Origin: Podarcis bocagei
Lineage: Eukaryota
Length of the DNA: 64,000 bases
Assembly: GCA_964188305.1 (NCBI GenBank)
Contig: OZ076886.1
Reading direction: 5' to 3' (one strand)
This document shows, one piece after another, positions 18,266 through 59,023 of this stretch (its first letter is position 1; each line of letters begins with the position of its first letter). The translations under genes were made by a program, and so were the position numbers. The notes below the pieces were generated by a model, which saw only the letters and a program-made list of their open reading frames with translations, was not told the DNA's origin and did not search any database.

Positions 18266-18608
18266 TTATTATTAATAATAATAATTGTTTATACCCTGCC
18301 CATCTGACAGGGTTTCCCCAGCCACGTTGGGCGGCTCCCAAGCGAATGTTAAAAACACAATACATCATTAAACATTAAATTTCCCTAAACAGGGCTGCCT
18401 TCAGATGTCTTTTAAAAGAGAGTTGTTTATTTCCTTGACATCTGCTGGGAGGGCGCTCCACAGGGCAGGCACCACTACCGAGAAGGCCCTCTGCCTGGTT
18501 CTCTGCAACCTCACTTCTCGCAGTGAGGGAATCACCAGAAGGCCCTCGGCGCTGGGCCTCAGTGTCCAGTAGAATGATGGGGGAGGAGACGCTCCTTCAG
18601 GTATACAG
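18230..18608 (-). mobile_element. 3' end of L2-clade LINE with AAT-repeat tail
   Basis: Reverse complement closely matches 46476-46820; (AAT)n tail 18230-18283. Confidence 0.85.
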
Positions 18609-19358: not shown

Positions 19359-20943
19359 TGCGCTATAAATTTAGAGCTTTTAAGTTAAGCTCTCTGCTCA
19401 GACCATTGTTGAGGTGAGAGGTGGTAGTATACCAGTCAAGAACAGTCCCTTTAACAGTTGTCTGTGCACTTCTTCTGCACTGCAAGTTAATAGTCATAGG
19501 TGTCCCCTTATTCCAGAGTGCAAACTGAGACAGAGAAATAGTAAACTGCCATATCTTTGCAGTACTGAAGTCAAAATGATTGCCTTGGGTTCCCTTATTT
19601 GTTTGGATTAAGGCTGTTGCCACTTGTTCATTACAGTCCTGTGCACGTTGAGTCAGAAGCAAGTCCCAGGGTCGTCAGTGGAGCTTAATCCCTAGTAGAC
19701 GTAAATCTGCTGCACTTCTCTCAGGCCACTGGTGAACAAACAGGTAGCCATGCTCAGATCACCACAGAATGGGCAGAAAGGCACTTCTTGTCATGCCACA
19801 ATGTCTGCTAGAACCAGCCTTTTTAGGGGTACACCCAAACTCCCAACTCACACATTTTCTTTGCTTTCTACTCTCATCATCTAGTGGTAGTTCTGATAGA
19901 CCTGCAACTCTGCTCTGTATTCCTTCTCCTTGTTCACAGGATTGACTGGTCACACTTGCATGTGATCTGTCATTGCTGGCAAATCTCTTCAGACAAATCA
20001 CCTGCCTCTCTCTTGCTATCCAGATCACATATCCCCTTTCTTGAAACGTGCCAGTTTATGCAGTGTCTGCTGTGACCTTAAGAATGTAGTTCCTGACATG
20101 TAAGAATAGACCTGGCTTCACTTGGTTGATAGATGGAAGCCAAAAGTCCTTTTCATTGTTCCTTTAGCCTCCCTTGAATGGTTGTTGCCGTGTCCCCAAA
20201 GTCGTCATAGAATTCTCAAGCAAGCTATGTTGCAATTAAGGAACTTCACAAATTAAGTGTCACATGCAACCAGGCCTATCCCTCTCCCTCTTTTTTTACA
20301 TTGTAGTTCGGACATTGGTCTCTGTTCAGTTGGCATTCTGCTTTGGTTGGCTTCTCTATGCTTCCTCAGAAGTCAGCAAATGCTAAAAAACCGTAATCAG
20401 ATCTCATGTTCCTGGGCCTTGCTTTTCTCTGTTTTAACCACTGAGTGTTTTTTCCTGTTCTGTAGTGATATGTTTTGTGCAGCTCCTGCACTAGTAAGCA
20501 GAATAAAGAGGTAATTCAGACATTCTTTTGAAGGCATAGCTATTTTTAAAAATGCTTACAGTTCCAGCCTTGCAATTGCAAGTATATAATAGCGAAACAC
20601 AGAGCCTTTGCTCTGATCATAGAAGTCTGAGCCTCGGAACATTTTTAGAAATTAGGAGAAATAACAAAAGTGACGTTGGTGATCCTAGTGTTAGTGGAAA
20701 TTTCCAGGGTCATGGGATGTAGATAACACTGTTTACTAACTCTTGTATTTGCTTGTCTTTAGTTGTATGCATGTACAGAAATATGATTGGCAAGGAAGAA
20801 AATGTATAAAGTGGGTGTGTGGACTAGAGGGAGTGGTGTAGAATGTTGCCATTTAACCTAAGACTGGGCAGAGGTGATTATTTTTGTGTAGCAATATCTG
20901 CTCCCCCCCCAACTGCTACTCCCTTAATACAGCTTTTGGCCTA

Positions 20944-21296
20944 CAGTGGTGCCTCGCAAGACGAAATTAATTTGTTCCGTGAATTTTTTCGTCTAGCGAA
21001 TTTTTCTTCTTGCGAAGCACGGTGTCGGAAAAGTTTTGGAAAAGCTTCAAAAATCGCCAAAAACCTCAAAAAAGGCTACCACACCGCGTTCTATGAGTTG
21101 CTCCTCGAAGTCAAGTCGCAACTGTATTAAGGGTGTTAAGAAAAAGGAAACAAACTTGCAAAAAATGCTAGACGTTTTCGTCTTGCGAAGCAAGCCATAG
21201 GGAAATTCGTCTTGCGAAGCAGCTCAAAAACCGCAAAACCCTTTCGTCTAGCGAGTTTTTCGTCTTGCGAGGCATTCGTCTTGCGGGGCACCACTG
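20944..21296 (+). mobile_element. Tc1/mariner-type MITE, family B
   Basis: TA-CAGTGGTGCCTCGCAAGACGAA ... TTCGTCTTGCGGGGCACCACTG-TA; repeated internal TCGTCT(T/A)GCGA motifs. Confidence 0.9.
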
Positions 21297-21554
21297 TAGT
21301 CACTTTCATTCCAGGGCGGAAGGGTATCTTCTTGAGCGACGGAGCCACTGAGAGGAGCAGGAAGCTTTGCATTTTTAAGACACATTTTTTCTCATGTGAA
21401 TATCTGGCTGGGTGTTTATCCTTTCATGATCTCCAAAGCTTTTTTAAAAAGGTTCCTGAATTGTTCTAGCCATGGCAATGGTGTTGTGTGGGTATGGTTT
21501 TTTACACTATACAATTATGTACTTGCAACAGTCGCACCACCCTTCTACTGTATA

Positions 21555-24700: not shown

Positions 24701-24857
24701 TGGATTGAAAAGCAAGGTATTTATGGGTGCTCATCTTGATGCTTTGGCCCCCTTTACCTGTGAATCTCAGAAAACATGTGGTGTCACTACCTTTTCATGT
24801 GGTGCTTATGATAGAGCATGGACCTTCCTTGTGGTCATCCAGGTTTTTTCACTGTTA

Positions 24858-25183
24858 CAGTGGTGCCTCGCAAGACGAAAAGAATCCGTTCTGTGATTCT
24901 CTTCGTCTAGCGGTTTTTTCGTCTTGCGAAGCAAGCCCATTGAAGGATTAGCGGATTAGCGCTATTAGCGGCTTTTAGCGGCTTATCTGCTGATCGGATC
25001 AGCTGATAAGCGGTTTAGCGGCTTAGAAAAAGGGGGGGAAACCAGCAGGAACTCGCAAGACATTGTCGTCTTGCGAAGCAAGCCCATAGGAAATTCGTTT
25101 TGCGAAGCACCTCCAAAACGGAAAACTCTTTCGTCTAGCGAGTTTTCCGTCTTGCGAGGCATTCGTCTTGCGGGGCACCACTG
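24858..25183 (+). mobile_element. Tc1/mariner-type MITE, family B
   Basis: Same TIRs and TA TSD as 20944-21296 but a different core. Confidence 0.9.
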
Positions 25184-25789
25184 TATATCCTGAATTAGAA
25201 TTCTAATATCAAGGCTTCCAGACAGTTTGGAGTGATAAATTGTGGCCGGATGCTAATTGGGGTTGACTGCTAGACTAGATGATCCATTAGTCTGACTCAC
25301 TATGAAAGTATTTCATATTGGTCCCTGAACCATCCTTTTGTGTCAGAGAAGGACTGGGGAAGGCTTTCCCAATTTAGAGAACTCTCGTTTTCATTTTGTA
25401 AATGTAGCTTTTTGTCCTGTGGCTGAAAAATCGTGCAGTGGCAACGTTTGAATAATAGAAATAGGAAGCAAAGCAGCAAAAAATTGATTGCCCAACTAAC
25501 AAATATCAATCTGGATGTTGAATTTATAATTTAAGGGATAACTCAGGTTTTTCACATCTGAGACAATCGATCACAGTACTGAGGATCCAGTGTAGAGTAA
25601 ATGCAGTATGCCTGGCAACATGCAACTAAAATATGTAAATCAACTGCAGCCCTCTAGCTTGTAATCTATTTCCAGCCCAGCCTTCAGTGCTGAAATGGCT
25701 CACCCCCCCCTCCTGCTTTTTCATATGCTTCATCTACCAGCTTCTGTTTTATTCAGGCCTTATACCCTGTGTCCTATGATTTACAGATA

Positions 25790-33438: not shown

Positions 33439-33755
33439 GTGCTCTGCCTCCCCTACTGGCAGTTTTACCCATGTGACTGTCTTTTGCAAGACAGGCCTGC
33501 GGGCCTCTTGCCTGTGCTTGGCATTCTCTTTTATGGCACGAGGAAATATCTGCATGTGAACCAGGTGGCCATATTTGAGAGGAGATTATGTAAAAGTAAT
33601 GCAGAGGCAAGAGACAACACGCATCCTCTGAAGTTTCTCATTCCTTCAGCCTGCACTGTCCTCAACTTTAGGATGGTTTTGCAGGCAGGGTGAACCATAT
33701 GTCTGTGGCAATGATACACAAAAATGCAGTGCATTGTTTCTTTTCCCCTTGGCAG

Positions 33756-33859
33756 GTTTCCCCATGTCCGTGACGTGTTGGCCGAGGCTCTGCGGCTGCT
33801 CCCCGCCCTTGGAGCCGCCAGTCGCTACCCTTTGGACTCCGTGATCCCTGACAAACGTC
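33756..33859 (+). other. SETD5: 5'-UTR part of the first coding exon (contains uORF 33764-33844)
   Basis: Pyrimidine tract and acceptor TTTCCCCTTGGCAG| at 33755; continuous with the ATG at 33860. Confidence 0.8.
33764..33844 (+). CDS. Upstream ORF, 26 aa: MSVTCWPRLCGCSPPLEPPVATLWTP*
   Basis: ATG 33764 to TGA 33842-33844, same frame as the SETD5 ATG and ending 15 nt before it. Translation is not demonstrated. Confidence 0.6.
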   Translation: MSVTCWPRLCGCSPPLEPPVATLWTP

Positions 33860-33930
33860 ATGAGCATTGCAATCCCTCTGGGAGTCACCACACCAGATAC
33901 ATCTTATTCAGATATGGCTGCTGGATCTGA
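33860..33930 (+). CDS. SETD5: SETD5 coding exon 1 (MSIAIPLGVTTPDTSYSDMAAGS)
   Basis: ACGTCATGAGC start context; donor GA|GTAAGT; 71 nt, phase 2. Confidence 0.96.
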
Positions 33931-36553
33931 GTAAGTTCTGCCTTGCCTGCTAGCGTGTGAAGGGCATGGAATCAGGCCTCGGTGTTCAGACTTGAGCTGT
34001 CCTGCTGAGCCCGGGATAGCAGGGAGTAAGCTAGCTTTGCAACAGATAAACCAGAAAGCAGAGATGGTATCTGGTGCACACATTTGATCGCGACGGAACA
34101 CCAAACAGAAGCACTTCCCCCTTTCCCTCAAATTGCGTCCAAGAAGAGGCACTGTCTAGAATACTGCTTTCCCAGTGATCTTTAATTCACACCTGTTGTA
34201 TCATACCTTGGTTGATAGGTATCTTGCAAGACATGAGCCCTGACGGTACTCTTCTTTTCCTCTCCTGTAGCCTAAGTTGCATGGTGCTGCTGATACAGAT
34301 GGCTGTGTGATGTGGGTAAGGAGGATCTTTCAGGCATCGGGCCTCTTGCCTATCTCAAACTGTTAAGTAGATTTTTCACCCCTTTAGTGTGGCTCTTTTC
34401 CCGAGGGAGGCTTGTAAGGTAGCTTGTGGGAAACTTCCTGCGCCAAAACCCAAATGAAGTGTCTACACTACAGGAAGGAAGATGCCTGGAGTTGAATTGA
34501 TCGTTGAGCTTAGTCAGGCACGGAAAGAGGGTCATGCCTTGCTGATGCTGTTCTGTGCTCCTGCACTTGTCTTCAGCAGTTTCTCCCAAGAATGGAGCAC
34601 TGTGAAGGGCCAGACACACTGTTTGAACCACCTGCTTGACAGACTGTACTCAGGAGACACTGAAAGCTCTGTGTATCTGGCCTCTGTTTGGTGGGCTTTT
34701 GTGAGGCGCTAGCATTCATGAAACACTCCTTTTTCCTGCATCTTTTTGTGTATCTGGATACACGGTGTAGTATATCGTGTCTGGTTTTGTTTCATACCAC
34801 GGACCTGATCAGGCTTTGTTGAGCACCTGTCCAGCTCAGCTTCAATCATACTGCATCTGGAGTATTCTCAGCAAATAAGCGCACTACAAAATAAATGTCC
34901 TTTGCTTTGTTTCCTGTCTAATGTTAGATCTGTTCTGAATATACGTCTCACTTCATAGCTATTTCTGTCAGGTCTTCTTGTTTTGATGACAGTTTTTTGT
35001 GTTTTGTTTTACTGGGAATGTTTAGGATCACATTCCATGATACTGTCAGGTTGCAGTGGCCTTGCGTTCTGTCGTCTTATATATAGAGCCCTGAAAAGGC
35101 TGTAGCTGTTACCCGTCCTGTCCTTGCCCTCCTTGGGAGCGTGGAGGTAGAAGCAGCTATGTTAAGATTGTTTCATAGCACTAGACTTCAGATGCATGTA
35201 GGTAAAGGGTCTGCCAGTCAACGTTTGCTCTGCTATCATGTGCCACCAAACCTTCATGGCCAAAGAGTAGCCACAATTTGAAGAAGGGTCTCTGCTTGAG
35301 TTGTATTAATTTTCAAGAGCAAGCTCCAGGGACTTGGGATGCAAAAGTAGAAATGGGCATGGAAAAGCTACTTTTGTTAGTAGGGTATCAAGAAAGGAAC
35401 ACATTGATTCAAGATTAAGCTTCTATAGGTAGAGGAGTTGCTGGTTTTACCAGTCCCACTGTTTTGAAGATCTCTGTAATTTAATTTAGCACAACAGAGC
35501 AGTAGTTAGGAATGAGGAGTTTGCGGTCATCTTGGAGAGAGACAGGAGTTCCAATAAGCAAGTACCGTGTGGCCACCCGTCCTCTTCCTGGCTGTAGCTT
35601 TTGAAAGTTGACTGCAGTTGCAGAAAGGACATTTCCTGAACCATATCCCTAATGCGTGCTTGCAGCGGCAGCTCCTCCTCCTCTTAGTCCTCCCCCCTCC
35701 TTCCAAAGAGAGCAATTTCTCCTTCTGGCATCAAGGCTTTGGCTTCATCACCTACGCTTTTCCTGTTTCCTTTTCTATAACAAGGACTCCCACAGCCTTT
35801 CACTAATTGCCCATTTTGTACAGTACCGTATTCTGAGTTGATTTTTTTCTGCCACCTTGTGGTGGAATGTTGCAATTTTCGGTCAGTAATTAGTTGGGAA
35901 TTCACCGCATCATCCCATAAGAAAGCAGGGTATCCTGAATATTTTAGTTTGTCCGGAGTTCCTTCCGATCCAGGTCATAGATATTCCTGTAGCTCTTGGC
36001 CTATTTTTGTCAAGTACTCTCAAGAGCTCCCATCACTAGAAAATTGTGTCTCGGCTCCTATCTGTATTGAGCAACTCATTGCATTTGAAGCAGCAGTATG
36101 TAGACGTTGTGGCCTGAAAGGTATTGCCCTTTAAAGTCTGAGGCTGTGGCGGGGTGATCTCAAATTGTATAGAGTTGAGTGGGGATCAGGAGGAGGAGCA
36201 AATCCACGAAGGGTTTAAAGTGAAATGAACAGCTAGCAGAATAATCCAGCGAGCAGCATTGTCAGCAGCTTTTACCTTCCTGTTGCCTCTTGCTGAAGCA
36301 GGGTTGCTCGTATTGCTTATCCGGGATGCCTCATTTTGAGGCAGCTGCCAGTCACTCGCCCTTCCCTAGCCCCTGCTTTATGCAGAATCCGGCCTTCATG
36401 GATTCCATACCTCACTTGCCCCTCAGAAAAGGTATGTCCATTCTCGGCCGGATATCTGTGTGGCATGAGAGAAACTGCTAAGACCTGGCTAATTTTTTTC
36501 TTCAAAGAACCACTTCCTCTACTGATTGGTTCTGCTCTTGGCCCTTTCTGCAG

Positions 36554-36659
36554 CCCAGAGTCTGTGGAAGCTAGCCCAGCTGTTGGTGAGAAAAATGTGT
36601 ATGCAAGTCATGGCTACGGGGCCTCCCAGAGGCACAGCTACCGAGGGCTGCCTTATGCA
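36554..36659 (+). CDS. SETD5: SETD5 coding exon 2 ([13 protein letters not shown]...RGLPYA)
   Basis: TTCTGCAG| acceptor, |GTGAGT donor, 106 nt. Confidence 0.96.
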
Positions 36660-38358
36660 GTGAGTACCGTCTCTCTTATCTGCAGCCGACTCATCTATTT
36701 TACCCATCCCCTCTCCCTGGCTTGTGCATGATTGAGCTGTATATCTTCTTTGAGGACGGCAGCATTGCCAAGTAACACATGGGCACTGAATTTCTAGCCC
36801 CGCGTTTGTGTTTGTTTAGTGCTTGCAGACAACTTACTGCGAAAGGGAAGTATGGAACTAGAACAGCCTAGTAAACAAGCCCACAAAGTTACTGCATTTC
36901 CAGAAAATCAGCCGGCATGAGAACATAGGCTACCCGCCTCTTAGCAAGACAGTGTTAAAAGAAAGCTTTCTGCCGAGGGAGCTGGCAAGAGGAGTGGTCT
37001 ACCGCTCTTCCGCCGTGTGCCAGTCACAGAGGAAGGGCTGCCTTTCCACTGTGACCAGCACAGAAGGCAAACTGGCTGGTGGAGGAGGAGGAGGACAGAG
37101 TGATGGGCCTGTTCGTTCACCTGCATTGAATACCTGGCCTCCTTTGCCTGCCGAGTGAGTTGTTAAATGCAGGCTTGGACTAGAAGGTGAGGGGGGCATC
37201 TCTTTTTCCCTTTTTGGTCTTTAGCACTGACTGCTCATAGAAACTACTACCCAGGGTAGACCTACCGATTGCAGGTAGATTTTTCTAATGAAGTTCCCCT
37301 CGCCCCTCCCCCAAAAGTGTATTGATAAGCCCCAGTATTTTGAAAGTTGAAAGCATAGGTTTCAGAATCAAGCCAGTTTGAAAGACAGCTTGCAGTTTTT
37401 CTGTGCTTAACAGTGCAGAATGCTTGCATACACATGCAGGTCTCTGCCTTAAGAAAAGCAAGAGGGACCTGCAAGGAAATGTTATGGTGTGGAGTGTGCT
37501 GGCTCAGGTTTTCAGCTGTCCCATTCCATCGTTTTTCATTCTCCATCACTGCCACCCTGTCTACACCTGTCAGCCAGCCAGTATTTCGTGCCCATCGAGA
37601 ATGCTCAGTCCTCACAGGATGGTTTGGGGCATTTTTTTCCATTTTGGGGGTTTGAGGAGGTGGAGTGGGTATACTTATGCTGAACCCCAAACACATTAAA
37701 TTATTGAATTTCTCTGTCAATATCTGTGAGCAGCTCTCATTCCAAACTTGGGGACAGTTTAAAATAACTTCTTTGAACCAGAAAATGACGTATCCAGACA
37801 TTGAGATGCTTATTTCTACCCTATACATATGCATACATACTCTGTCTTCTGGTTCCAGACACTCCATTCTCCCCCTGCATCCCACCCGGTTGCCATTTTC
37901 ACCCCTTAGTCTCCACATTTTGTGCCTTGAAAAGATAGCATAGAGCTGTTTGAGGCGTTTTCCCTGCAGATTTTTTTGGTACTTGTTGCAAGCCCCTGAT
38001 TTCCTCTGAGACTGCTGGTACTTCTTTCTTGTGTGTGGGTAGTGTGGTTTTGTTTCCATTAGCACAAGCATAGGTAGTTCAAATCAGTGTTAGTACATTT
38101 TGCTAAGACGCCTGGATATCAGGGCTTTCTTTATCTGTGGTTGGACTGAGAAAACAATTGCTCCGCCCAGTTTTAGAGAGAGTTCAAAGTTGTAGGTCCT
38201 TGCTCTGTTAGCCAGAGTTCCTGTCGCTCCTCAAATCTGTGCATGTGGTGGTGGGTAGGTTTTGGAAGTGTCTTAGGGCTCACATGTTGTGTAAAGTCAT
38301 GCCTCTTGCTCTCCTCCCCCGCATTCAAAATAAAACTGATGCAAATGTTTGTTTTCAG

Positions 38359-38570
38359 GATCATAATTACGGAGCCCCTCCTCCTCCGACCCCTCCTGCT
38401 TCTCCCCCTGTCCAGACCATCATCCCTCGTGCAGAACTGAATGGCCTACACTCTCATGATGAGGAGAATTCTGGGGACACAGAGAGTTCTTCAGAAGCAG
38501 AGTCTATTCCTAGCTGGTGTCACTGTAGTCTCTCCCAAGATGGTTTCCTCATCAAATGTGAGAAGTGCAG
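38359..38570 (+). CDS. SETD5: SETD5 coding exon 3 ([10 protein letters not shown]...[18 protein letters not shown]); alternative acceptor at 38416
   Basis: TTTTCAG| acceptor and internal in-frame TCCAG| acceptor; donor AG|GTAAGT; encodes DHNY motif and degenerate half-PHD. Confidence 0.95.
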
Positions 38571-39366
38571 GTAAGTTCTTGCCTGTAGGCAGCTTCATAC
38601 ATGGGAAACGAGGGGGGTGGGGAGAATGTTTAAAGAGGCTTCCTGATTGCTCAGTGGACCATTTTCTTTACCTTCAATTGGTCACTGCAGCAAAGGAGCT
38701 GACTTACACAAAATCAACACGCACATTTTCACAATCCAGAAGCCAAATCCTGCAAGTTCATCAGATCAAATAAATAGTACCAATGTCAGATTGTCTAAAA
38801 GTGATTTGTTTGAGCTGACCAAATGCAGTTGGTTAAATAATCATACCTTATGCTCAGTGGAGTGTGTCTGAAACTCTCCATGAAGTTAGGTGCTTCTAAT
38901 GCAATGGTGAAAGAGTAATAGCGAAGGAGAGGTGGAACTTCTTCAGAGATTGGCAAGCAGCAGAAGGGGGCTTGGGGGTCATAAGGAACATGAGATCTGA
39001 TGTCTTTCCACTTTCCTGTCCTTCCAGGCCATCACTGGTCCAGGGCATTTCAGTGGCTCTGCTTTCACCCACTGTAGGCTTATTTCCACACATACGAGAG
39101 CTAAGAATGTGGTCTTTCTGAAACTTGAAAGATGGGGCTCTTGAGAACATGAATATTGCACTGGGCACACAGCCCATTATTTGCTGAAGCGATGGCCTTG
39201 GACGTGAATGTGTGAAGCCGAGACGTGGCCATTAAATTCATTTTAACTTTATATAACACTTTGATGTCAGGTGATCTGGTGTTCCGCTGAAGACCCAAGG
39301 TTAATTTATTTTAAGCAATATAACCCTTAATAATGCCTACTTTTGGTTTCTGTTGCCCTTTTGCAG

Positions 39367-39425
39367 GGGGCTTAACCGAGGGAAAGTGATCAGACTTCGT
39401 CGGAGGAAGCAAGACAACGTGTCAG
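39367..39425 (+). CDS. SETD5: SETD5 coding exon 4 (GLNRGKVIRLRRRKQDNVS)
   Basis: TTTTGCAG| ... G|GTGAGT, 59 nt. Confidence 0.95.
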
Positions 39426-39738
39426 GTGAGTTAGTGCCCCCAGGCTTGCGGGATTTGAATGAGCGGGTGCCCTGATGCAGTGAGAGTGCTCTGTGTCTCA
39501 TTGCCTCTCTTTGTCATCTTTCCCAGTTTACCTGAGATCTCAAGAGTATAGGGTAGGTACAATGGAAGAGCTGAAAGGGGCAAGCGCAAAGCAAGTTGCC
39601 ATTGTGAGTGGAAGATGATTGTTCCTTGCAGCCTTTTGGGGAGAAGAGTGCAATGTTAACTCACCGGGGTGGGACAGGGCAGGCACAAGTTTTTTCAGAA
39701 CAAAGGGGAAGTTGCCAACAAGACATTTTTCACGGCAG

Positions 39739-45536: not shown

Positions 45537-46475
45537 TACCCCATGGCTGTTGAAAGTGAAGTAAAATGGCAGCAGCTCAGATAACAGCAGTTCCTTTTCA
45601 TCCTTGAACCTAAGAATAGACAGACAAGAAAAGAAGAGAGGTTAGTCAACATGAGGAAGCTTCAAAGGAAGCCTACAGACATAGGAAATGGAAGGTAAAC
45701 GACAATAGTCCCCCCCTTGAATCTTAGCACTGCCTATCCGTGCCAAACAAAAAAATATAACTTGGTCCAGTTAGCCAGTGTATGTATATGAGGGATAGGA
45801 TTGAATAGGGTGGGAGATGAGGAAAAGCTGGCATTTTCCCTAGCAGCAACACTAGCTTGTTGCTTGTATCACTGTTTTGAATCCCCTGGAGCGTATATTG
45901 CCTGAACAGCCATCTTTTTATGTTATTCTAATGGCCACTGCTACTGCTTCTTTCTTATTTCCTGCTAAAACCGATATGAGCGGCACACACTTTCATCGGT
46001 TGGGCTTCTGTAGCCTTGGAAACAAGGTGCTTTCTTGTCACGGCCTTTAAAAACGAAACAGTGTCCTTTAAACGGTTATACAGAGAAGTGGAATATTCAT
46101 TATCAATTTAAAAACAGCAACAACCAAAGTTTGATTCAAAAGGCAGAATCCAAAGCACAGAATATCCTGAGAGGAAGGTACAGTTGAGGAAGACCTAAAG
46201 TTGGGGGGGGGGGTTAGGAAGAAGCAAGTGAGAGATGACTTAGCAAGCAGTTTAATGACTTAAGTATAAATGTGGGGGGGGGGGAGACAGGGGTAACACG
46301 CATTTTAATCCTAGGCACCTAATATTTCCACATGACCATGCTGTTCTGAATTGCAATTGCTTTGAGATCAGTGTATTCTGAGTTGACAGAGAACTAGCAC
46401 CCTGTGTTCCGTGTGGTCAGTGCTCAGGCAAGTTGATCCACGAGGAATGGAGAGCAGGACATTATTGGGATGTCT

Positions 46476-46820
46476 ACTGAAGGAGCGTCTCCACCCCCAT
46501 CGTTCTGCCCGGACGCTGAGGTCCAGCACCGAGGGCCTTCTGGCGGTTCCCTCATTGCGAGAAGCAAAGCTACAGGGAACCAGGCAGAGGGCCTTCTCGG
46601 TAGTGGCGCCCGCCCTGTGGAACGCCCTCCCACCAGATGTCAAAGAGAACAACAACTACCAGACTTTTAGAAGACATCTTTAAGGCAGCCCTGTTCAGGG
46701 AAGCTTTTAATCTGTGATATTTTACTGTATTTTTTGTTTCTATGGAAGCCGCCCAGAGTGGCTGGGGAAACCCAGCCAGATGGGCGGGGTACAAATAATA
46801 AATTATTATTATTATTATTA
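46476..46820 (+). mobile_element. 3' end of L2-clade LINE
   Basis: Encodes ...RTLRSS..LLAVP..RAFSVVAPALWNALP..FRRHL, a typical L2 ORF2 C-terminus, then 3' UTR and (ATT)n tail. Confidence 0.88.
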
Positions 46821-50109: not shown

Positions 50110-50481
50110 GTATGTCTGCTTTTGGTTGTGGTCCGTGCACTTGGCCCAATATTTCTTTTTTAAAAAAAGAAAAGAAATTTGAATGTCTAATGAACATGCA
50201 TGACTTTCCTTAAAGCACCCCAAAATATGCCCAGGTTTGGTTTACTGAAACTCTTCCTGGAAAAGAAACATACAACTAAAATTGTTTTAACTGGTTCTCG
50301 TATTTTCAGTGGATGTAGGGAACAGCTTCTCCCTGCTTACAACACTGCCTCATGACACTTTAAAAATTACAGAAAAGGCATGGTCTTCTTCCATAGGCTC
50401 ACTAGCTGTTCCTAGATGTGAATAGATTATGCACTGCATGCATTGTTAGAAAGACAAGACTGGTGTGTTTGAACTCCTATA

Positions 50482-50697
50482 CAGTGGTACCTCAGGTTAA
50501 GAACTTAATTCGTTCTGGAGGTCCGTTCTTAACCTAAAATTGTTTCTTAACCCGAGGTACCAATTTAGCTAATGGGGCCTCACGCCACCGCCACACAATT
50601 TCTGTTCTCATCCTGAAGCAAAGTTCTTAACCCGAGGTACTATTTCTGGGTTAGCGGAGTCTGTAACCTGAAGCATCTGTAACCCGAGGTACCACTG
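50482..50697 (+). mobile_element. Tc1/mariner-type MITE, family A
   Basis: TIRs CAGTGGTACCTC / GAGGTACCACTG with TA TSD. Confidence 0.9.
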
Positions 50698-52762
50698 TAT
50701 TTAAATACAGGCTCTTGCAGGATTTCTTAAAACGCTTTATTGTATGGGTTTAAAAAACTGCAGTAGCTGAAACATCTAAGTAGTAATTGATGCACCTTGC
50801 CTACTGGGACTAAGATTCTAAATTAGGTGCACTGTACACATCTTGAATTTTGTGGTTGCCAAGATATTGCTGATTGAGATCTCTTGAACAGAGATAACCT
50901 GTGATGATTCTCGGTTAGGTGAGCAGGAAGGAAAGTGCATTTCACACCTGTTTTCTCTCTGCACCGCAAGCTGTAGCTAGATTAGGGAGACTCGGAAAGT
51001 CAAGAGTATCTGTTTCAAGAAGGGCTTTGCATAGCCCAGGACTGGGTGTGAGACATTCACCATGATGCACACATTGTGATGCCAGCTCTAGATTTTCCGT
51101 AGACAAGTTTTCATTTTAATCTTTTGCTTTATTTTTCTAGGCTACTAGTTACGTTGTGTGTCTAATGCTTTCTTTAAATGTATTTTTTGCCTTGAGAGGC
51201 AATACCTACTCAGAGTCTGCCTAAAGCAGCTTGTTTTTCATGCCTTACAAAGGCAGGATTAATAGCTGGGTTTCCAGAGGGCTCTAAGCTGCAAAGGAAT
51301 GGCCCATGGACACAGGAATGCCCTGTATGCAGTTTCCTGGGCCTCACGAGTTACCTGGTATAAAACAACAAAACAACCCCCCACCCATAAAATTGTGTCA
51401 ACATAACCCCTCAGGCAGATAAGCAGATTGGGAGTCTATTCTGGTTTAGGCTGCTTAAGTAATGAAAGTAGTTCTCATAATACATGACAGCTTTTTAATA
51501 AAGCTAATATTTGGGTATCTTGCTTGTATTTTGCCAAGTTGCCTGTCAAGGGCAAGGTTCAAGAAAGGGGATAGCCAGCAACAGGACTATGAGGAAGTGG
51601 CTTCTGTCTACTTGAGTCTTGAGTGGGCCAATGCATTTCCACAACTATCTTGAACACCCACAAGGGCTTTGAAACTTGTTTTCCAACAAAATTGTGGGAT
51701 GGTCTATGTGCACATTTGCGTGGTGAGTCTAGAGCAGCATAGGATGGCCATACTACTGGTCGTCTCTATTTCTTTGCCTGCTTTTGTTGAATGTATATTC
51801 TATGCTGCAACCAGGCCAGAAATGGGCTCCCAGCATTTCCTTTTAGACTGCTAAGCATATCTTTGCCATATCTTGCTCTGACACAGCGGGATAAGCCGTA
51901 TTTAGAATGCACCTTCTGCTAATTGGGCCCTGAATCCGGTTCATTTCTCCGTGTGAATGTCCTGGCCAGCTAACCCCAGTGTGCTTTTGGGCACAAAGCA
52001 AAGAATTCAATTTTACTTTCCTAATTTCAGTTTAGAGCATTAATAACATAATCCTGTGTGCTTAATTAGCATCGGTAATTTCCAGATTTGGTTTTACCGT
52101 GTGCGTGTTCAACATATGAGAGTCTTGGACTAGGTAGGAGTGGCAAGCTGTTGTTTTTATGTTTCCATATGCTAAAATAGTGGTACCTCCCTAGTAAAAA
52201 AAAAAGGCAAAGCAAAAAAGCCGGATGCTGGCGTTCAAATCTTTTCATATAAAGATACTGTTCTAGTTGTCATGGCTTGTGGAGATGCATTTGAAAATGG
52301 GCTATAATAGGTGAATGGCTCAGAGTCCAAGGGGATGAAACTTTTGGCCTGCACTGGCTCCCTCTCTCTCCTTTAAGGCTCCTAGCTAAGTTTCCCTACA
52401 CACAAGCCCCTGTTGCCCTCCCTGCCTTAGGCCATTTCCTTCTCCTACTGCACCATCATTTGCCAGTTAAAAATATGGGCTCAGCCTAAAACATGTATAT
52501 TGAGTGACGTCATGGAAAATAGACTATTTGCATAGAGGCATCACTTATTTTTAGTAAAAACAACAACTTTGAGTTGGGGTACAGGTTGTAAACGGCCCCA
52601 CCCATAAAGCGATTGAGGTGAAAACAGATCCTCCCCATCCCCTGGGGCATTGACCAATAACAGATGGAAATTGCTGAAAGTGGTCTGTTGCAAGTCGGGG
52701 GCGGGGGGAGAAACACTTTAAGTGGGAGCCTGTGCATTATTAAGCAAGGTTTGTTTTTGCAG

Positions 52763-53585: not shown

Positions 53586-54987
53586 GCATGGGCCTGTTGC
53601 CATTCTGCAGATATCAACCCACCTGTTAGCCTGCTCCTGAGGGGAATGCAAGGGGGAACAAGCAGAAAAACCGCACAAGCTGCGTGAATGGTGTTTCTTT
53701 TGCCGGGTGACTACTCATTCTGACATTTCCCTTGCAGAGGGGGGCAGGGAGGAGTGTAAGAAGGGGATCCTCCTTTTCCAAGATCAAGAGAACCCATTCC
53801 CCTTTGGGCTTCATCTAGAAACAGAGACCTTATTCCCAGGGAGGAAGTGCACTGCACCAAACCCAGTGCTACCACCTTCCTCCACTTGCTGGGAAAATAA
53901 CTGGTTAAAAGAGCAGGCACCTGGTTGCAGAACAGCCACTCTGCAGCACCGGAGCATACATCTGTGAGCAAAGCAAAAAGACAAGTTTTAAAAACAGTAA
54001 CTTTGCATCTGTCTTTGCAGAGGAAGAGGGTGGCGATCTATCCAAGTCAGGGATCAGTTTTCCAAGGACGCGAGACGAGGCCCTAGGCAGTGTACAGATA
54101 ACTGTGTGTTACACAAAGGTTAGAGGCATCGAAAGCAGAAAAGCACTAGTTCTGGGCAAATTGCAATTTTAAGCGAGAGGTGGGTGGGGGGAGCAGAAAA
54201 GGCTCTCTGGTGATCTTTCTAAGAGGCTTCTATGGGTTGGATTCTTTGAGTTAAAAGTTGTCCAGTGGCATTTCTTAGGACCACGAAATCATTTGGCTTT
54301 TGAGGGGTTTCTTGCAACTCAGATTAAGTTCTGTCACAGGACGTAAAGAAGTGCTGGGAAGGGCAGGCCTATGCAACTCCCTTGTTAATAGGGTGGCGGG
54401 AGAGAAGAGAGGTGCTGTTGTGGCTTGAGAAGGAAGGGAAATTGGGGGGAGGACTGTGTACAAGATTCTTATGCAAGGGACAGCTCACATATGCAAGTCA
54501 GCATCTTGGGGGAACAACTCAAGAGTGCTTTTTGCAGCTACTGAAATCAATAGTTGTGGGGTTGGGGATCTAACCTACCAGCAAAAACTTGGCAAATGAC
54601 CTCCCACTATCCACTTACAACTATCCCGGGGCTGCTGTTAGGCAAAGGTTTGCATTGTGTGTTGAAGGGTAGAGCACAATCTTATCAGTAGATGGATGGA
54701 AACACTGGAGCAGCCCTAGTTCCCTTGGAATAGTTGACTCTTACTGGTTAGAAGGCAACTGTGGTTTTTTGGCCAACAGGATTGATGTCTGTCGATGGAA
54801 TATCGGCTAATAGAGGTTCCCTTTGGGATGCAGGTGGGCAGCTTGCAGCTCTGAGCCAGATTCCATTTGGCCTGATTCCTTTTGTGTGGCAAGGAGGGAA
54901 AGAGGAGAAGGTATTGGAGAGCAGAGTGGACACTTTGACCTCTGACCCCACTCTCACTTTTGGCTCAGGCTCCACCCATCACCAATA

Positions 54988-55193
54988 CAGTGGTACCTCG
55001 GGTTAAGAACTTAATTCGTTCTGGAGGTCCATTCTTAACCTGAAACTGTTCTTAAACTGAGGTACCACACTAGCTAATGGTGCCTCCCACTGCCACCACG
55101 CGATTTCTGTTCTCATCCTGAAGTAAAGTTCTTAACCAGAAGTACTAGTTCTGAGTCTGTAACCTGAAGCGTTTGTAACCCGAGGTACCACTG
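54988..55193 (+). mobile_element. Tc1/mariner-type MITE, family A
   Basis: TIRs CAGTGGTACCTCGGGTTA / TAACCCGAGGTACCACTG with TA TSD. Confidence 0.9.
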
Positions 55194-56308
55194 TATGTGA
55201 CTCCAGCAGATTACCCTCCAGGGCATGTGACCCCCCCAGCAGAAAAAAGGCTGCCTGCCCTGCTTTAGACGTTCTACTGATAGTGTGACGGGTGGCTTAC
55301 TGATGAGCAGCTACTTTGCAGCTGGGAAAAGTGTTTCAAGTTATCCAACTGTACGAGTGGGCGAAAGAAGCCTTGGTCTATTGAGAAAGAGAGATTAGCT
55401 TGTGTGTGCAGATGCAAAACACTCCAGTTGAAGGAAAGTGGGGGCTTCAAAGTTCTCTTTTGGTCTTGCCATCAGTAGCTGGTCTCTACCCTAGCAGGAG
55501 ACTTGCTGCTGCAAGGGTAGTGGAATTTTGACAAAATAAAATTAACAAGGCCTCACCAGTGAAGATTGCTTGGTGCCTGAGGATAGAGATAATAGAGCCG
55601 AACAACCCTTTTACTGTACTTTGAGGATTGATTTGAAAGCATTGGGGGCAGTAAAGAGTGCAGAGAGGGAGGCCTGGATGTTGTCAACAGGAAACTTAAC
55701 AGGGGGACTTGTGGGCATTCCTGCAGGACCTGCTGGATGTTTCCTGCAAGGACTAGTTCTTGTTCCGCCTTGTTTTGAATCCTTGCCAGATTTCCCATCA
55801 GCCTAATGAGTGCAAGGAAGATGCACCATTCCTAGCTCAGGAAGACTGCAGGTAAATGAAAGGAAGCTTCACAAGGAAGTGATGCGGCTGAGTGGCAGAG
55901 GGAGAGGCTTGGGTTATCACTTTCTGGGCCACGACCCTGTCTTTTGGCAAGATACATACTGCTGTGTTGGTGGAGATAATATGGAGATGATGTAGAGAGG
56001 CTTAGATTTTGGACAACCTAGACCTTATTAGCTTGTTGATTGCTTTTGGTTTGGACCCTTTTTTAATCTCAGCGAGTTCCCTTGAGCCCTGAAATTGGCC
56101 CCCTTTCTTACCTCCCCCTGTTTTGGTAGTGCTCCTCTTTGGAGAAAAGAAGGGTTCTTTTAGAGAGAGAGAGGGAGAGCTGAAGAGTTGTCAGTATGGC
56201 AAGAACCAGTCAAAAATTTAAAGATTCGTGTAGGGGGAGTAGATGATGAGCGTGGATTGGGGCTTTGTAATGGTAGAGTCACTACCTGGATGCTGTGTTG
56301 CCTTTCAG

Positions 56309-56562: not shown

Positions 56563-58633
56563 GTAAGTTGGGGGGCAGGATGGCAGCTTTCCCTGCAGAC
56601 CTAGGATGTATGCATCAAAACTCCTTGGAAAGACACAGGTAGACCTAAGAAACGAGAAGATAGGTTTTTTAAAGAATCCTGTGTATTCCGAGAATTTGGC
56701 ACCTGCAGATTATAAAGTCCCTATTCTCCTTTATTGTTATGCACAGTAGATGGATACTAGAGTGTGCAAAGAGTTACAGGTTACCAGAAACACTATTCCC
56801 TGCCCTCTGGTTCACTTAATCTCAGCTTCCCTACCCCAGTAGTATCCAGAGATGCTGTCAGCTTCTGGGCTGCTGCTCTCCTGCATTCACCTCTTAGCAA
56901 ACTCTAAGCTTTGGAGAACATTAGCTGTATTGCATCCCAAGAATTCCCCATCTGCATGATGTGTTTCCTGTTCTTCTTACAGCCATTTGCCTCCCCCTTT
57001 CAAAACTTCTGTAAACCTTTGTAGTGCAATGCAGGTGTGAGTTGTGCAGGTAGCCTCAGTTTTGCAGTTTCCCTCATGACAAGCACGTGCCAGTGCTTTC
57101 ATTCTGAAGCATCCCATTTTCTAACTTTTTATTGTGTCCCATATTTGTGCTTTGGGTGGAGTTGGCGCTTCCGATTCCCATTTTTCAATATTGGGCCACT
57201 AAACTCTTTAGGTCTGCTGCTGCCCCTTAGCAAAACTCCCTGGAAATGTCTATTCTTATGAAAGTTGAGATGACCACAATTTGGGATTCTGGACTTTCTG
57301 CTATTCTCAACTTTCTGCATAATTGTATGGGCTTTGAGTCTGGGCTGTGCATTTCTGTACACATAAGAAAACGCTATTGTACCGAGACAACCCAGACTGT
57401 TGGAATCCAGATTCTGCAGCTTCTAAAACGGTGCAAATCGGAAGCCTTTGCATGATTTCTCGTTCTTTGCAGAACTCTACTTCTGTTTATTTTTTATTTA
57501 ACGAAATGTATGTACCGCTTGATTGTAACATAACCTCTAAGTGGTTTACAAGGAGGATTTATTCTGCTGACTGGGATGGCAGCTCTTAAGCCGCTTTAAA
57601 TCCTGCTCACCAGCAGCCCTGACTCCTAAGATTCCATCAGGCATTGCCCACATATTCTCAAGTGTAGCTTCGCAACCATAGTTGCTCCTTTGGAAAAAAA
57701 AAAAAAGAGAGAAAAAAAATTCTTAAGCTGAATTCTGTGGCTGGTGTCCTGTGGCTTTTCTATACTTCCATATAATTGTAGCATTTCCACCACCGCGATT
57801 ATGGCCCTGCTGCTTGAGCGCAAGTAGGTTGGTCATTATACAGTGCCTGATCATTAATTTTGCTTACTATCCAAATGGCAAGATCCCCAATCACTTTCCC
57901 AGTGCCTTTGGATTCAGGTCTCGTGGGCTCTTGCACAGTTAGGCCACTTCCAGTTCTGCACGGAAACAGAGACAGGACTCGTTGGGCTGGGGGAAATGCA
58001 GAATCGTGGTGTTGCCAGAAGCCACAGAAACTTGAGTGGCCTTAGCTGCACCAGTCTTAGTGAGACAGTGGCATGGGATGTCACTAGGACTTTGTATCTT
58101 GAGACTGGACGTTGGTCCCAATTTGCACTCCTGATTTGAAGCAGCACTTAAGGAGTGTTGGTCATAGCAAACTTCAGTTGGACTTCAAAGGTTTCTGCCC
58201 CGTGTAAGAAAGTGAGCGGCTTCTGCTGCTGTATGACTGAGTTTTCTGCCCACCTGCCCCTCTTTCTGTGTGTTGCAGGGAAAGGAGCCTTTCAATGTGT
58301 TAAAGTTTCTACCACCCATTCTCCCCAGTTTCCCTGTGTTGAGGCTTCCCCTTTTCACACCATTCCACTCATTCATGACACGTTATTTATGTTTCCTTTA
58401 AATTATTTCCTGCTGCATTTCTGCCCGATCCATAATTGTCTTTTTAAAAAAGGAAGAAGCAAGTTAAATAATAGTGCATTGTTAAACAGCAGATAGAAAT
58501 AGTTCAAAGCAGCTTGAGCAGCCATCAAGTTGAGCCTACCTCCTATAAAATCAACAGTGAAGCTATAAAAAGTTACAAAAAAACCCTCAACCACACAAAA
58601 ACAAACACAATAAAAAAATAGCCCAAAGCGCTA

Positions 58634-59023
58634 AGGGCCTTCTGGAGGTTCCCTCACTGCGAGAAGTGAGGTTACAGGGAACCAGGCGGAGGGCCTTCTC
58701 GGTAGTGGCACCTGCCCTATGGAACGCCCTCCCAGCAGATGTCGAGGAAATAAGCAACTAACTTACTTTTAAAGGACATCTGAAGGCAGCCCTGTTTAGG
58801 GAAGTTTTTAATGTTTAATGCTGTATTGTGGTTTTAACATTCGCTTGGGAGCCGCCCAGAGTGGCTGGGGAAACCCAGCCAGATGGGCAGGGTATTAATA
58901 ATAACATCATTCTTCTTCTTCTTCTTCTTCTTCTTCTTCTTCTTCTTCTTCTGTTGGACTATTTTGACTGTTGTTAGCCGCCCTGAGCCCAGCTTCGGCT
59001 GGGGAGGGCGGGATATAAATAAA

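Follow-up and report, generated by a model that had tools for sequence, protein, structure and literature searches.

The interval at positions 33756-38570 of the window (the whole 64,000-nt stretch of Podarcis bocagei contig OZ076886.1, assembly GCA_964188305.1, that was analyzed) is, on its + strand, the 5′ coding end of SETD5, and we think it likely that it contains three separate features acting after transcription, each of an ordinary kind, and no single device. These are a short upstream open reading frame (uORF) ahead of the main start codon, a small alternative exon with an in-frame stop codon in intron 1 (exon A), and a pair of tandem acceptors at coding exon 3 that include or omit the tetrapeptide DHNY, which fits the binding motif of HCF-1. 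An initial annotation of the interval had listed a uORF, three exons generating premature stops, and an alternative acceptor controlling DHNY, and had read them as one dosage rheostat for SETD5. Its observation was partly confirmed, and its interpretation is partly supported.

One translated exon is 99.3% identical to SETD5 of Podarcis muralis and 98.7% identical to that of P. raffonei, P. lilfordi, and Lacerta agilis, which places the genome among the lacertids; further SETD5 exons follow downstream, through the window to ~63.9 kb. The main ATG lies at 33860, giving the ATG exon 71 coding nucleotides. Coding exon 2 (106 nt) is 93-100% identical in squamates, and skipping it shifts the frame. 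We compared the interval with the SETD5 loci of four squamates, namely Lacerta agilis, Rhineura floridana, Pogona vitticeps, and Heteronotia binoei, and with those of the turtle Eretmochelys, Crocodylus porosus, the passerine Chamaea, and the bowfin Amia; a Logan contig that is crocodilian-like by its exon spacing (L001) was also compared. Squamate identities were taken from a five-species MAFFT alignment, and positions 33854-33903 stood as N in the local BLAST and MAFFT comparisons. Full-length SETD5 relatives were reached via the partial protein P0006 and then through 90% clusters.

The uORF that the initial annotation had claimed is present. Its AUG (33764) and in-frame TGA (33842-33844) both lie inside the 5′ untranslated region (UTR) of the ATG exon, the acceptor of which is conserved. 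It is in the same frame as the main open reading frame (ORF), from whose ATG it is separated by a gap of 15 nt, and its start context is weak, with C at -3 and T at +4. The uORF occupies the same place with the same length in eight sauropsid loci (Lacerta, Rhineura, Pogona, Heteronotia, Eretmochelys, Crocodylus, Chamaea, and L001). Outside its coding nucleotides, the ATG exon is 97-100% identical in the four squamates, against 93-96% for the coding exons, and this untranslated sequence is also kept in turtle, crocodile, and bird. In the bowfin, a related uORF of 25 codons, MSARCWLRHCGSPPLEWSAAAIWTP, stands at the start of the exon, and the lizard and bowfin peptides have MS..CW.R.CG.SPPLE....WTP-stop in common. 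The bowfin uORF is at -148, out of the main frame, displaced by a C-rich insertion; as both spacing and frame have changed, what has been kept is the uORF itself and not its spacing or frame. On these alignments, conservation of the uORF, peptide ends included, spans bowfin to sauropsids and goes beyond that of neutral sequence. Among sauropsids, the differences that change an amino acid, counted by eye on the alignment, are about as numerous as the silent ones, so selection on the uORF peptide is not demonstrated.

Because only 15 nt separate the uORF stop from the main AUG, re-initiation would be poor, and the likely role of the uORF would be to lower translation. Re-initiation would probably fail over this distance, and the main AUG would be reached by leaky scanning. 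In being short, in its weak start context, in its nearness to the main AUG, and in peptide ends kept for >400 million years, the SETD5 uORF resembles the repressive uORFs with conserved peptides, but its own repressive effect is putative. A search for a SETD5 uORF found no paper in the literature library consulted.

The tandem acceptors at coding exon 3 were also as the initial annotation had described them. The outer AG (38357-38358) and the inner AG (38414-38415) give in-frame exon starts at 38359 and 38416, 57 nt apart. From the outer acceptor the exon opens with GAT CAT AAT TAC, encoding DHNY, and use of the inner acceptor removes 19 residues that start with this motif. In the weight matrices described below, the outer acceptor scored 7.2 and the inner one 10.7, and the C/T-rich proline codons of the optional segment also supply the inner acceptor with its pyrimidine tract. 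Five squamates share both acceptors in identical form. NCBI annotates forms with and without DHNY in P. muralis, P. raffonei, L. agilis, Rhineura, Paroedura, birds, and mammals, so this splice event is already in public annotation; of the 119 relatives among the matches listed, 68 carry DHNY and 33 lack it.

DHNY (38359-38370) fits the HCF-1 binding motif [DE]HxY, is conserved in relatives ranging from hagfish-type and fish sequences to mammals, and sits at a position homologous to the HCF-1 motif of the paralogue MLL5 (compare P0044 and P0045). A statement in PMC10940595 that cites Zhou 2013 has MLL5 (KMT2E) binding HCF-1 via its own motif, and in THAP1 the letter-for-letter identical DHNY is the essential HCFC1-binding motif (PMC11811203). 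SETD5 itself co-purifies with HCF-1 and OGT in a study that gives neither the site nor the isoform (PMC8979820). In contrast to the MLL5/KMT2E and THAP1 motifs, that of SETD5 is optional by splice choice, and binding via DHNY is putative. Choice between the tandem acceptors adds or removes DHNY and would make HCF-1 binding dependent on the isoform; by analogy with these two proteins, an isoform-dependent SETD5/HCF-1 contact is plausible. Searching the literature for a DHNY or HBM (HCF-binding motif) isoform of SETD5, we found nothing. In ray-finned fishes (P0017-P0042 and P0065), the 30 nt immediately preceding the DHNY exon form a conserved open frame (MQQSSVVCCQ-DHNY), and isoform X1 of the bowfin includes these upstream codons (MRRSSVLCCQ), which suggests that fishes have a third acceptor farther upstream.

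Exon A lies in intron 1, and its splice site scores match or exceed those of real sites. Read in the main frame it gives D L S C M V L L I Q M A V stop; the TGA (34308-34310) is overlapped by an ATG (34310-34312) in the arrangement TGATG, which is followed by TGG and then by the donor. It is fully identical (100%) in both Lacerta and Pogona; identity is 96% for Rhineura and 76% for Heteronotia, where the exon is 42 nt long with the frame preserved; the stop and the TGATG overlap are preserved in this gecko as well. The pyrimidine tract and the AG and GT of its splice sites hold in four squamates, the GTAAG donor and ~40-60 nt of either flank are conserved as well, and by conservation exon A ranks first of 4111 windows of 45 nt. 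It is absent from intron 1 of the turtle, crocodilian, and bird loci.

Annotated isoforms require its donor. For L. agilis (P0169) and P. raffonei (P0176), the NCBI models include an isoform X4 that consists of MW followed by X1 from residue 60 (MW-DHNYG...). Such a protein needs an exon ending in ATGTGG joined to 38359, and ATGTGG/GT (slash, splice site) occurs a single time on the + strand of window positions 1-38358, at 34310, where it closes exon A; it is single in the Lacerta locus too, again at the end of exon A. The uniqueness of this site supports use of the exon A donor in transcripts that skip exon 2. We thus infer use of the donor from the NCBI models and use of the acceptor from conservation.

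Inclusion of exon A would put an in-frame UGA into the message and make full-length SETD5 impossible: the open frame closes after 36 codons, with more than a dozen coding exons downstream in the window. If exon 2 follows, the ATG at 34310 reaches a stop after 8 codons and there is no long ORF, so the transcript is predicted to be a textbook substrate of nonsense-mediated decay (NMD). If exon 2 is skipped, the same ATG is in frame with exon 3 and reads MW-DHNY.... The fate of an exon A transcript would be degradation by NMD or, in the latter case, a protein opening with MW-DHNY. We favor the unproductive, NMD-directed reading over the alternative start, and keep the latter as a live rival. Exon A resembles the conserved poison exons of splicing and chromatin regulators, such as those of the SR protein genes, in being a short stop-carrying exon with near-perfect conservation of exon and flanks in a dosage-sensitive regulator. 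It differs in that its conservation is confined to squamates and its NMD sensitivity and regulated inclusion are putative; SETD5 is no splicing factor and so would not be expected to autoregulate directly.

The two remaining poison exons of the initial annotation did not hold up. All AG and GT dinucleotides of both introns were scored by simple weight matrices calibrated on real sites, for which acceptors scored 7.2-12.1 and donors 5.0-12.5. Acceptor/donor pairs 25-300 nt apart and at least as good as the weakest real sites numbered 27 in intron 1 and 18 in intron 2, against 26.8 and 17.3, respectively, in dinucleotide shuffles, and similar numbers were found on the opposite strand and in the large upstream intron. 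A premature stop arises from nearly all such pairs. With observed counts at the level of the shuffles, three well-formed stop-generating candidates are what chance would deliver, and counting well-formed intronic splice-site pairs is uninformative unless joined to conservation or RNA data. Among sites scoring at least 4 in the two introns, the dinucleotide was kept in all three distant squamates for 7 of 53 acceptors and 2 of 23 donors. Both conserved donors are at the end of exon A, which makes exon A the sole conserved AG/GT pair. Candidate B (36386-36431) has an identity of 0.33-0.70, and of 0.15-0.70 in its acceptor region, in distant squamates, where its splice dinucleotides are lost; candidate C (37059-37154) has an identity of 0.17-0.36, with its splice sites missing there. 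With neither splice sites nor sequence conserved and pair counts at the shuffle level, both were rejected as poison exons. Of the three exons, the squamate alignments of the introns therefore bear out only exon A, whose donor the annotated isoforms also need.

Could exon A instead be mainly a coding device? With exon 2 skipped, its terminal AUG would open a shortened SETD5 (MW + DHNY...), reached via UGAUG re-initiation or in transcripts that lack the main AUG. We regard this as possible, if doubtful. Isoform X4 of L. agilis and P. raffonei is exactly this protein; the TGATG overlap and an exon length that is a multiple of three are kept even in the gecko; birds have an alternative N-terminal exon of their own in intron 1; and some mammalian models join an alternative N-terminus to exon 2. 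Annotation pipelines, however, choose the longest ORF regardless of translation, the ATG and TGG are close to the donor and may be conserved for splicing, and the upstream 36-codon ORF would block most ribosomes. A more elaborate version strikes us as quite unlikely: exon A would act as a squamate-specific, near-invariant switch in which UGAUG re-initiation in exon-2-skipped transcripts yields a SETD5 that starts exactly at the HCF-1 docking motif, and, together with the uORF and the DHNY choice, it would set both the amount of SETD5 and its docking to HCF-1. At the other extreme, nothing here may be regulatory, exon A being an intronic enhancer or splicing silencer, the MW isoforms artefacts, and the UTR constrained in some other way. 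Intron 1 does contain other conserved blocks that have no exon features (35700-35860 and 35940-36000), and the UTR is more conserved in nucleotide sequence than the coding exons are. We nevertheless consider this explanation unlikely, because the splice sites, pyrimidine tract, and frame of exon A are kept across the deepest squamate split compared, two independent annotations require its donor, and the peptide ends of the uORF are kept in the bowfin despite an altered spacing to the main ATG.

The rheostat of the initial annotation, with uORF, poison exons, and DHNY switch as one coordinated and possibly autoregulatory control of SETD5 dosage, seems to us very unlikely. It draws on the presence of three regulatory features in a 4.8-kb stretch where a haploinsufficient gene begins and on an intron 1 that is unusually alignable, at 100% in Pogona and Heteronotia against ~50% for the whole gene. 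Against it, two of the three proposed exons are matters of chance, and SETD5 is not known to be an RNA-binding protein. The parts are also of very unequal age: the uORF extends back to ray-finned fish, models of both DHNY forms exist for squamates, birds, and mammals, and only squamates were found to have exon A, which argues against a single co-evolved module. Nothing links the three into one device, and coupling and autoregulation, which remain conjectural, are not supported. Our preferred reading of three separate features has points against it as well. The use of exon A is read from Gnomon models of proteins from two close relatives, the junctions of exon A with the ATG exon and with exon 2 are predicted only, and the conservation of the uORF at the nucleotide level could come from another constraint.

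In human, loss of one copy of SETD5 causes a neurodevelopmental disorder, so natural brakes on SETD5 output are of practical interest. The uORF, shared by bowfin and sauropsids, is the first feature to look for in mammals, and with an optional DHNY at the MLL5-homologous position, the idea that SETD5 binds HCF-1 in an isoform-specific way can be tested directly; the interest of the locus rests on these two. The initial annotation had proposed the elements as candidate antisense targets if conserved in human, and for exon A this finds no support, since the only conserved stop exon of introns 1 and 2 was not found outside squamates, being missing from the turtle, crocodile, and bird loci; a lizard-specific exon is uninformative about a human target. 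Human SETD5 does have a natural poison exon, of 97 bp in intron 17, and a deep intronic variant that raises its inclusion is pathogenic (PMC9912651). It is likewise a small intronic exon with a premature stop in the same gene, and is included at low level (PMC9912651), but exon A differs from it in lying in intron 1, in having no sequence relation to it, in being squamate-specific, and in that it may also open an alternative start.

Table 1. Features of the SETD5 5′ coding end and its introns 1 and 2, in window coordinates.
Feature	Position	Strand	Remarks
SETD5 main-start (ATG) exon	33756..33930	+	acceptor AG 33754-33755, donor GT 33931-33932
uORF	33764..33844	+	26 codons + TGA (MSVTCWPRLCGCSPPLEPPVATLWTP, then stop); within the ATG exon
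Alternative exon A	34271..34315	+	45 nt, in-frame TGA; acceptor score 10.5, donor score 7.7
Candidate B, pseudo-exon	36386..36431	+	46 nt; good site scores, chance match
SETD5 coding exon 2	36554..36659	+	106 nt, PESVEAS...GLPYA
Lacertid-only intron segment	36945..37359	+	~415 nt; flanks abut in Rhineura; contains candidate C
Candidate C of the initial annotation	37059..37154	+	96 nt; unsupported, acceptor score <5
SETD5 coding exon 3	38359..38570	+	212 nt, two acceptors, the upstream one at 38359
Optional segment of exon 3	38359..38415	+	57 nt (19 codons), between two in-frame acceptors

Intron 1 aligns end to end among squamates (identity 0.77, 0.61, and 0.60), whereas about half of the whole gene is aligned and the alignment of intron 2 is poor. 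With turtle, crocodile, and bird, alignment is limited to exons and exon edges. The second-best conserved blocks of intron 1, at 35700-35860 and 35940-36000, have an identity of 0.87-0.90 to the three distant squamates; they contain no conserved donor and have no Rfam match, and an Rfam scan of 33904-38800 gave no match. At ~35997, about 20 nt (...GCATGAAGTATGTA...) are missing in lacertids and kept in Rhineura, Pogona, and Heteronotia. The lost segment holds a GTATGT donor-like site just past a conserved acceptor at 35974, and may, from its sequence, be a small exon lost in lacertids. Downstream of the interval, a short block at 39357-39432 is kept in turtle, crocodile, and bird and is probably the next small coding exon (...MSRGKVIRL...).

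Alternative N-termini of SETD5 appear in models from other groups. That of Passer domesticus isoform X1 (MDLTLYQSESPKGLLQRLDYVASST) maps to intron 1 of Chamaea SETD5 (L008:3306-3383); going by this match, birds carry a separate alternative N-terminal exon within intron 1, with a sequence unrelated to lizard exon A. In mammalian and marsupial isoforms (P0052, P0107, P0131, P0140, and others), the first 23 residues are swapped for MEVLRDPIKKNSSESKPAQSGFSRGNSPLSC (MEVLRDP...), joined to exon 2. Isoform X3 of the newt Pleurodeles waltl (P0120) is modelled without the 106-nt exon 2; starting at an upstream ATG, it passes through the ATG exon in a different frame and on into DHNY, and this frame stays open across the whole lizard exon (window 33715-33927). 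A deposited Podarcis lilfordi model (P0175, 1735 aa) joins SETD5 to the product of an upstream gene (UniRef name 'peptidyl-tRNA hydrolase') and is probably a read-through or an annotation artefact.

The interval was also said to contain no recognisable transposon, and our results are consistent with this: the repeat families detectable by comparison within the window have no copy between ~30057 and 44876, and intron 1 is alignable throughout in squamates. The lacertid-only segment of intron 2 has no second copy in the window or in the compared loci, and may be an insertion that escaped recognition. In the flanking introns, repeat copies coincide with stretches that do not align in other lizards. 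One interspersed repeat family, which includes an ORF-like stretch (...SLREAKLQGTRQRAFSVVAPALWNALP...), has copies in neighbouring introns at 46387-46680, at 58561-58781, and, inverted, at 18284-18567. Other repeat families lie at 1581-2254, 21552, 50479-50699, and 54985-55204, and also at 20942-21298 and 24856-25185.

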